NCBI GenBank assembly: GCA_025786725.1
Contig: JAHLTZ010000018.1
Coordinates: 62,001 to 126,000 of the forward strand
DNA: 64,000 nucleotides
Direction of reading: 5' to 3'
Source of the DNA: Syncephalis fuscata S228
Lineage: Eukaryota; Fungi; Zoopagomycota
Below are positions 14,596 through 15,802 of the stretch, one piece after another (position 1 is the stretch's first letter; each line of letters starts with the position of its first letter). A model generated the notes under the pieces. It was not told the DNA's origin. It made no database searches and worked only from the letters and a program-made list of their open reading frames with translations. The position numbers and the translations under genes were made by a program.

Positions 14596-15802
14596 ATGCG
14601 TTGTTTTACTTTCCCTATCGCTACCATTGCTTTGACTTTTATGTTAGACTCTACAAGTCAGCATGTAGGCGCATCCTTATTCAATAGTATGTAATATTCT
14701 ATAAGCTATGTAGATTTGCTACTAATTATCTATGTACACATGTATAAATTTTAGACCCATTTTCATCATCCAATGATTTGAATCAGCCAGGACTTAAAAT
14801 CACTCCTTATGAACGTGATGTTGTGGATAAATCATACAACCTCGTAACCTACAACGGTGTAGATGCAATTATTCGCTGTACGGATAATAGCCAAATGCAA
14901 CGAGGAAGCTTTTATGCCTACAATGCAAGTAGCGCCATATTTAAGTATTAGATTGTATATTTAACGAATTTTATTTAATAGACACTTTATGAAGCTGCCA
15001 AATCCAAAAGATTTTCAAGGAAGGTAAAGACTTTGTTTCTATTCCTTTACATCGATTCGAGCACAAAGGTCGCAAATGCTTTGTCATTGGTTTGAATTGT
15101 GACACAAATATTGGCCAATACTTTAAAGACCAACCAGTTAAAGTAATAATACCTCAGCTATTGAAGTTCGTCCGCCAAATTATAAGTGGTATGTGCTAAA
15201 TCTATACTCAGTTTAAGATGGCTAATATGCTGCTAATTAAAATGCAAAGGTCTCATGTTTATGCATCGATCAAGAGTGACCAACAATAGTATTGGTCCAA
15301 AGAGTAAGTTTAAAACAATAGATTTTACTAATAGTGCTAATGTGTATTTACTTGACTAGCCGTTTGCATTAATAAATCCATAACTGGCAGTCCAAGTGTA
15401 TTGTTGTATCATTTTGGTCTAGCACGACCGTTGGTATACAACGGAAACAGATTGGTTCCTGAAGACATGGAAGGCTCGCCGTTTTTATTTGAATCAGTTG
15501 AAGAAGAGAAAAATATAAAAAATGATAGAAGAAAATTTGATACATGGAGTGTTGGCGTTTTGATGTGTCAGCTGCTCGTTCAAGATGAATTTACTTGGGA
15601 TTTTAGCAACCAAGATATATTGCCAAACGAGACGGTTGAAATGGAATTGAAACAACAAACTACTGGTCAATTGCATTCTTCAATGCTTGCATCGGTACTC
15701 TTTACTCTACATAGATTAATGGCTAAAGATGCTAATCTTAGAGATACACCAGAGCAATTCCTATATACAACTAAAGCCATGCAAGGCTCTTTTGTAGAGT
15801 AG
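14596..15802 (+). CDS. Secreted protein-kinase-fold pseudokinase (4 introns; apparent 1-nt frameshift near 15006-15009)
   Basis: Hydrophobic N-terminus MRCFTFPIATIALTFML..VGA, then GLMFMH-RSRVTNNSIGPK (HRD loop degenerate), YHFGLA (DFG to HFG) and FDTWSVG (subdomain IX). Colinear with 51611-52785. Confidence 0.75.

Follow-up and report, generated by a model that had tools for sequence, protein, structure and literature searches.

A predicted pseudokinase with a signal-like leader in the mycoparasite Syncephalis fuscata, and the cysteine-paired kinase family to which it belongs

Why should a protein that begins like a secreted one carry the fold of a protein kinase whose catalytic residues have been replaced? 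The question is raised by gene A, located at 14596-15802 on the plus strand of a 64,000-nucleotide stretch of the Syncephalis fuscata S228 genome (contig JAHLTZ010000018.1, positions 62,001 to 126,000; this whole stretch is referred to below as the window, and positions are counted from its first letter). Classical protein kinases are cytosolic enzymes, and the families of the secretory pathway are few; where these have been studied (ROPK, WNG, FIKK, FAM20 and VLK), they are central to parasitism or to extracellular phosphorylation. The gene A protein is probably a eukaryotic kinase fold that is directed to the secretory pathway, cannot transfer phosphate, is held by disulfides and acts by binding; a role as a secreted effector is plausible from its sequence. 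What appears to be new here is that most members of the family look active, that the Gly loop seems to have been lost family-wide, and that a second cysteine pair would define a pseudokinase subclade containing gene A and another gene of the window (gene B).

Gene A is intact. Its coding sequence (972 nt, open frame, product of 323 aa) is spread over five exons, and the four introns (68, 50, 61 and 56 nt, in phases 1, 2, 1 and 1) are all of the GT-AG type. A GC-AG version of intron 2, which would have matched the phase found in gene B, was rejected for want of an in-frame acceptor. The product was retrieved as P0011 (NCBI KAI9594739.1, [quoted passage not shown]) with a profile of last-exon peptides run against a library of representative proteins. 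Its sequence equals the exon-by-exon translations of gene A, and the public annotation therefore agrees with the following gene model.

14596-14686, plus strand: exon 1; start codon, leader residues 1-27 (about 14596-14676) and first residues of the predicted mature protein, ending at a phase-1 GTATGT donor.
14755-14944, plus strand: exon 2; N-terminal extension, NQPGLKI (beta1) without a Gly loop, and alphaC region without its Glu.
14874-14876 and 14877-14879, plus strand: AIIRC of beta3 in exon 2; Arg71 (in place of Lys) and Cys72, respectively.
14995-15188, plus strand: exon 3; beta4, beta5, hinge, alphaD and alphaE.
15077-15079 and 15098-15100, plus strand: cysteines of exon 3; family-invariant Cys122 of beta5 and subclade Cys129 of the hinge, respectively.
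15250-15303, plus strand: exon 4 (54 nt); degenerate catalytic loop with NNS (15282-15290) for HxD and Gly174 for Lys.
15303, plus strand: end of exon 4; PK, then the split codon of Thr177 at the Asn position.
15360-15802, plus strand: exon 5; beta7 with Cys179 (15365-15367), and YHFG with His194 (15410-15412) for the Asp of DFG.
Continuing to 15802, plus strand: remainder of exon 5; SVE with Glu224 (15500-15502), DTWSVG (15539-15556), Arg304 of subdomain XI, and stop codon.

The kinase fold was examined by sequence and by structure. With Pfam, the whole protein matches PK_Tyr_Ser-Thr (PF07714) at 27.6 bits (cut-off 23.1) and lies just below the cut-off of Pkinase (PF00069; 30.9 bits, cut-off 31.7); exon by exon, the last exon matches Pkinase (E=7e-4), and exons 2 and 3 give no match. 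A phmmer search against PDB sequences reached DAPK1 at 1.5e-5. Structure prediction with AlphaFold2 (AF2) from a 26-member family alignment gave a predicted local distance difference test (pLDDT) score of 80.1 and a predicted template modelling (TM) score (pTM) of 0.81, with 146 residues above a pLDDT of 90 and with strands and helices in the order expected of a kinase. When the model was compared with the PDB by Foldseek, the matches listed were protein kinases only (CASK, MK2, CHK1, SYK, CaMKII, ULK1, DRAK and IRE1 among them; E about 1e-10, TM 0.55-0.70, about 280 columns). The initial annotation of the locus, made from the letters alone, had described a kinase-like scaffold and had named AlphaFold and Foldseek as the check; run here, both bear it out.

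Active-site residues were assigned from two agreeing alignments, that of the family and that with DAPK1. The Lys of beta3 is replaced by Arg71 (AIIRC), no residue aligns with the Glu of alphaC, HxD has become NNS (Ser172 for Asp), the Lys and the Asn of the catalytic loop are Gly174 and Thr177, and the Asp of DFG is His194 (YHFG); replacement thus extends to five of the positions on which ATP/Mg binding and catalysis depend. A GxGxxG Gly loop was not found in gene A. The residues that determine the fold are all kept (Cys72, Cys122, Glu224, Asp237, Trp239 and Arg304), Glu224 being the APE Glu (S-V-E, 222-224), Asp237 and Trp239 belonging to DTWSVG, and Arg304 to subdomain XI. By its sequence gene A is a pseudokinase, a member of the fold and not of the active enzymes. 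It had been said that every catalytic motif was altered; this stands for the beta3 Lys, the catalytic loop and DFG, but not for APE, which had been read as SPF and whose equivalent retains the invariant Glu, and DxWSxG is retained as described. The Gly loop had rightly been reported missing, but its absence is not a decay of gene A's own, because GxGxx[GAS] is missing in 22 of the 23 full-length family members.

The amino terminus reads MR, then CFTFPIATIALTFML, then DSTSQHVGA/S, so that one basic residue precedes an apolar core of 15 residues (CFTFPIATIALTFML), and the polar stretch after the core ends in VGA/S (the slash marking the predicted cleavage site), in keeping with the -3/-1 rule. 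A membrane helix would need a longer and stronger apolar core than these 15 residues, for which the highest Kyte-Doolittle value over 19 residues is 1.24. The remainder of the gene A protein was scanned for another hydrophobic segment, a C-terminal anchor and an ending of the HDEL/KDEL type, and none of these was found. Residues 11-30 have a pLDDT below 50 and are unstructured in the AF2 model. By this heuristic reading residues 1-27 look like a cleavable signal peptide, as had been claimed of the spliced gene.

The leader is a property of the family and in this way supports the signal-peptide reading of gene A. A hydrophobic N-terminal segment is present in all full-length public family models, and about 19 of the 26 family loci in the genome have, 700-900 nt ahead of the last exon, a leader-like ATG open reading frame (ORF) whose start is hydrophobic, the comparison rate being 16% of random 200-nt windows. 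In many paralogues the apolar core is followed directly by small residues at -3 and -1 and then by x-Pro; in gene B and several other paralogues the apolar stretch extends over 18-24 residues. Between the predicted cleavage site and beta1, most members share a conserved F-L-G-Q-x-L ... A-F-G-Q-x-G-L-x-I stretch (examples are P0003, P0004, P0030, P0058, P0067, P0076, P0093, P0101 and P0129, at alignment columns of about 75-135), which in residues 28-46 of gene A is weakened to SLFNN...NQPGLKI. The stretch could form an N-terminal extension packed against the N-lobe (modelled at a pLDDT of 71-81); alternatively, since it directly follows the leader, it could serve in sorting or processing.

Together with the leader, the FLGQ...GLKI extension and the absence of a Gly loop, the family is marked by an intron in the catalytic loop and by an invariant cysteine pair. 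The Cys directly after the position of the beta3 Lys (Cys72) is found in 22 of 22 aligned rows and the Cys of beta5 (Cys122) in 26 of 26, a conservation that exceeds that of every catalytic residue across the family alignment; three canonical kinases taken as controls from the same search lack equivalents of both. The catalytic-loop intron, in phase 1 and before the Asn position, is found at the same column and in the same phase in genes A and B. At other loci (L006, L007 and L013) an acceptor and the start of an open frame stand immediately before the matching start of the last exon, and at L013 a donor follows HGDLKPD; the exceptions are L004, L005 and L009, which read through in one long open frame.

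Catalytic residues are retained more widely in the family than gene A would suggest. About two thirds of the full-length public representatives keep the Lys, HxD, the second Lys, the Asn, the Asp of the DFG position (as DFD) and the Glu of APE, so that most members are probably active kinases, gene A is presumably a degenerate offshoot of this leader-bearing family, and the assumption that the family was dead throughout has to be given up. KAI9592733.1 and KAI9598222.1 are examples of active-looking paralogues in which the Gly loop is missing. The degenerate rows are P0011, P0015, P0067/P0154, P0016, P0008, P0051 and P0006; as judged from its residues, the most degenerate known member is gene A (P0011).

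A second cysteine pair, Cys129 of the hinge and Cys179 of beta7, the latter two residues past the catalytic-loop Asn position, occurs only in P0011, P0015, P0067/P0154, P0016 and P0008, and neither cysteine is found in any other row. These rows form one clade in the family tree (Shimodaira-Hasegawa-like approximate likelihood-ratio test (SH-aLRT) 98), and the split between the family and the three canonical kinases has an SH-aLRT of 96. The shared rare pair is independent support for the clade; since proteins of S. plumigaleata belong to it as well, the design of a dead kinase is older than S. fuscata. The longest end branch of the family is that of gene A (1.99, median 1.14), followed by that of gene B (1.92), and the nearest relative found for gene A is about 25% identical (best 150 profile matches), in agreement with the fast evolution claimed for it.

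The two cysteine pairs suggest how such a protein might be held together. The strands of the kinase N-lobe are ordered 1-2-3-5-4, which makes beta3 and beta5 antiparallel neighbours. Counted from the Ala of VAIK and from the gatekeeper, positions 72 and 122 come out as cross-strand partners, which makes a disulfide between beta3 and beta5 plausible. Both pairs would form disulfides in the lumen of the endoplasmic reticulum (ER): Cys72-Cys122 would staple beta3 to beta5, and Cys129-Cys179 would bridge the adenine pocket at its floor, from hinge to beta7, and so could hold the two lobes together without adenosine triphosphate (ATP). At the position of Cys179, active kinases have a residue that contacts the adenine ring. 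If the disulfides form, folding would take place in the ER lumen and the route would be a secretory one; lacking catalysis, as its residues predict, the protein would act only by binding. The mature protein would then leave the cell or reach the haustorial interface, where binding rather than catalysis would be its function. It might pair with active leader-bearing paralogues or regulate them, on the model of FAM20A and FAM20C, or it might equally, in the manner of ROP5-type pseudokinases, bind proteins of the host fungus at the haustorial interface or act as their decoy.

Gene B, to which the initial annotation had compared gene A, belongs to the same subclade and lies further downstream in the window.

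51611-52785, plus strand: gene B (P0016, KAI9594751.1), 324 aa, of the same pseudokinase subclade as gene A.
51611-51725, 51777-51952, 52000-52213, 52263-52316 and 52370-52785, plus strand: the exons of gene B.

The two proteins are 24% identical, and the genes have the same five-exon layout, with a fourth exon of 54 nt in both. Gene B keeps the Asp of HxD (YPD), the Asn, DFG and APE, and has Glu in place of the beta3 Lys. The start is shared as stated (NQPGLKI in gene A, GQLGLKI in gene B), as are Cys72, Cys122, Cys129 and Cys179. Four common intron positions had also been claimed. For introns 3 and 4 column and phase are identical; for intron 1 the phase is the same and the place about the same, in a stretch that aligns poorly; intron 2 is shifted, with phase 2 in gene A and phase 0 in gene B at a distance of about six columns.

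Gene B and its flanks occur a second time in the genome as a near-identical copy (window 50872-54282 and contig C67, 13679-17089), with 11 differences in 3411 bases, only one of which is exonic (52288, exon 4) and leaves the exon-4 peptide the same. No such second copy was seen for gene A. Other near-identical family pairs were noted on small contigs (C35/C193, C223/C205 and C90/C97); such pairs may represent haplotigs, or else duplications of very recent date. Directly after gene B (52990-53200, plus strand) comes a gene start that was read from the letters as a RAD3/Chl1-type helicase. The surroundings of gene A are ordinary, with a P450 gene and a PCI-domain gene of the proteasome-lid type upstream, AT-rich sequence downstream, and short ORFs only on the opposite strand beneath it. 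With the adjoining helicase, gene B is, like gene A, placed among housekeeping genes and not in an obviously repeat-rich island.

The size of the family in the genome was estimated in several ways. A search with the last exon of gene A as a single sequence gave 12 further places, and at most of these the earlier exons match as well, with the spacing preserved. With a profile built from 12 last-exon peptides, 136 places matched at E <= 1e-3, 20 of them above about 83 bits; canonical kinases reach about 77 bits against this profile, and for this reason the C-lobe profile alone gives no exact count. The lower bound is set at about 20-25 loci, counting those in which a leader-like first exon is present as well, and the family is multi-copy, as had been expected. 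Tandem pairs are found on contigs C201, C314 and C361, four matches on C13, and seven on C90, the contig of the window. The clusters, which contain tandem or inverted pairs, extend over C201:287664-289765, C314:72187-74368, C361:50238-52854, C13:15211-167225 and C90:77362-428088. Some family loci carry in-frame stops inside the match (C317:522949 with two TAA, and three 74-aa matches with one TGA each). The first of these (L007, C317:522949-523185, minus strand) is a close-looking relative of the last exon of gene A (AICINKNKK...) with an open frame of 75 aa and two TAA; the interruption marks either breakage of the copy or the presence of an additional intron.

Public records place named members in S. 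fuscata, S. plumigaleata, S. pseudoplumigaleata and Thamnocephalis sphaerospora. All four species are haustorial mycoparasites of Zoopagales, and the organism that carries gene A is the parasitic fungus that had been supposed. In this analysis the family was met only in Zoopagales (three Syncephalis species and Thamnocephalis). Diatoms and chrysophytes have long multi-kinase proteins that score high against the profile; these were rejected as members, their scores being the sum of several ordinary kinase domains. A word-based homologue search with the family alignment was dominated by ordinary kinases (from the family, only P0033 and P0011 scored among 8000 candidates) and is uninformative on distribution. 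The neighbours of P0154, the relative in S. plumigaleata, differ from those in the window (M36 peptidase, RRM and Myb/Cef1), and comparison of the two neighbourhoods allowed no orthologue of gene A to be assigned by synteny. The best PDB matches of the family profile (about 1e-13) are ULK1, DAPK, PLK1, CDPK, MARK and SIK; the family therefore derives from ordinary CAMK-like kinases and not from atypical secretory kinases. Public records label its proteins "hypothetical" or "kinase-like domain-containing". Full-text search brought up no description of the family in papers on Syncephalis, Thamnocephalis, Piptocephalis, mycoparasite secretomes and secreted fungal kinases, and kinases are not mentioned in the main text of a zygomycete secretome paper (PMC9391592) or of a 2026 paper on mycoparasite effectors (PMC13188720).

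Apicomplexan ROPKs and FIKKs had been offered as parallels; these hold as analogy and fail as kinship. The ROPK family combines active members (ROP18 and ROP17) with pseudokinases (ROP5 and ROP2), and the dead members act by binding. Like the ROPKs of Toxoplasma, the present family is a parasite-lineage expansion with a signal peptide, as predicted here, with active and dead members as judged by sequence, and with fast divergence; unlike them, it is of independent origin, fungal, and marked by family-invariant cysteine pairs, and its delivery to a host is putative. ROP chains are absent among the PDB sequence and fold matches listed, at the top of which are ULK1, DAPK, PLK1, CHK1, CASK and MK2. 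As to FIKK features, gene A has AIIRC at the corresponding place, no PEXEL export motif (RxLxE/Q/D) was found between its leader and beta1, and the likeness of the family consensus AF[IV]KC to FIKK is superficial. With Pfam at E <= 0.01, PF00069 and PF07714 alone match P0011 and P0016, and no FAM20, VLK-DIPK or CotH match was obtained. Kinship with ROPK, FIKK, FAM20, VLK and CotH was rejected on these Pfam results and on the CAMK-type neighbours found in the PDB and by Foldseek.

WNG kinases of Toxoplasma are secreted, lack the Gly loop as a family trait and can be active (PMC6442604). The likeness lies in the loop, which the Zoopagales family lacks while most of its members keep the catalytic residues; kinship is not indicated. 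Gene A differs in having lost the Lys, Asp, Asn and Asp as well, and the activity of the Syncephalis members is a prediction from their residues. FAM20 kinases of the secretory pathway are known in animals (PMC7948968). FAM20A and FAM20C (PMC4421793, PMC5413348) offer a concrete functional comparison: there a lumenal pseudokinase has its own disulfide pattern and active paralogues, and the working model to be drawn from it would be that of an allosteric partner of the active kinase. FAM20 is a different, atypical kinase family, unlike that of gene A, which Pfam and fold place among the classical eukaryotic protein kinases. In microsporidia, large, rapidly evolving families enriched in signal peptides are predicted to be exposed to the host, and two species have expanded protein-kinase families (PMC5423893). 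These resemble the present family in being large, predicted to be host-exposed and found in fungus-related obligate parasites; they differ in lineage and hosts, PMC5423893 reports neither conserved cysteine pairs nor a pseudokinase subclade, and the comparison is by description only. Gene A is not a member of the WNG, FAM20 or microsporidian kinase families.

Other explanations of gene A were weighed against the evidence given above. It might be a resident regulator in the ER or Golgi lumen or in the wall, pairing with an active paralogue to govern how proteins secreted by the fungus itself are phosphorylated. In its favour, most members of the family appear catalytically competent, with the same leader and cysteine pair; an active kinase requires ATP, present in the secretory lumen and mostly lacking outside; the members lie in local clusters and tandem pairs; and a secretory pseudokinase with its own disulfide pattern, FAM20A, activates FAM20C (PMC4421793, PMC5413348). 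This account is nevertheless doubtful, because gene A has neither an HDEL/KDEL-type ending nor a membrane anchor, the family is found only in obligate haustorial mycoparasites, and a paralogue divergence at the level of about 25% identity is more typical of host-facing proteins. That the protein is not secreted at all, its hydrophobic stretch being an uncleaved anchor or an organelle-targeting sequence and its kinase fold cytosolic, is very improbable. The apolar stretches of 18-24 residues in gene B and several paralogues could pass as signal anchors, but the core of gene A, with 15 residues and a 19-residue maximum of 1.24, could hardly do so, many paralogues have small -3/-1 residues and x-Pro after the core, and invariant, co-occurring cysteine pairs, absent from the control cytosolic kinases, are hard to explain in a reducing cytosol.

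It is unlikely, too, that gene A is a decaying or silent relic duplicate whose frame has stayed open by chance. The loss of all catalytic residues and the longest end branch would suit a relic, as would the isolation of the gene (its cluster at 90% identity has a single member) and the in-frame stops at some family loci. A relic would not be expected to show an open 972-nt frame over five exons with four GT-AG introns in frame-keeping phases, to keep its fold residues and a model with a pLDDT of 80 and 146 residues above 90, or to share both cysteine pairs with a subclade that is also present in S. plumigaleata; the dead-kinase design is therefore older than S. fuscata and has been maintained. 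Some points nevertheless weigh against the reading preferred here, that of a secretory pseudokinase acting by binding. We infer both the secretion of gene A, from a heuristically read leader and conserved cysteine pairs, and its expression; the disulfides are proposed from cysteine conservation and the known strand order of the N-lobe; the longest branch and the loss of all catalytic residues also fit a gene drifting to loss; the subclade joins several long branches, so that long-branch attraction is possible; and any link of the protein to a host is hypothetical.

An extension of this reading to the whole family is more tentative. Syncephalis and its relatives may export a whole set of classical kinases by the secretory pathway, Gly-loop-less active ones and dead ones, gene A included, in which a disulfide staple takes the place of the nucleotide pocket, and may deliver both at or through the haustorium into host hyphae, with the dead ones serving as decoys or as partners of the active ones. 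If true, a kinase/pseudokinase effector system would be on record for a fungus for the first time, convergent with ROP5/ROP18 and directed by one fungus against another, and such a family would give a first molecular handle on the manipulation of fungal hosts by Zoopagales. The pseudokinase subclade is in itself a clean natural experiment, in which a kinase fold has been kept after catalysis was lost and in which the second cysteine pair puts one cysteine where active kinases contact the adenine ring.

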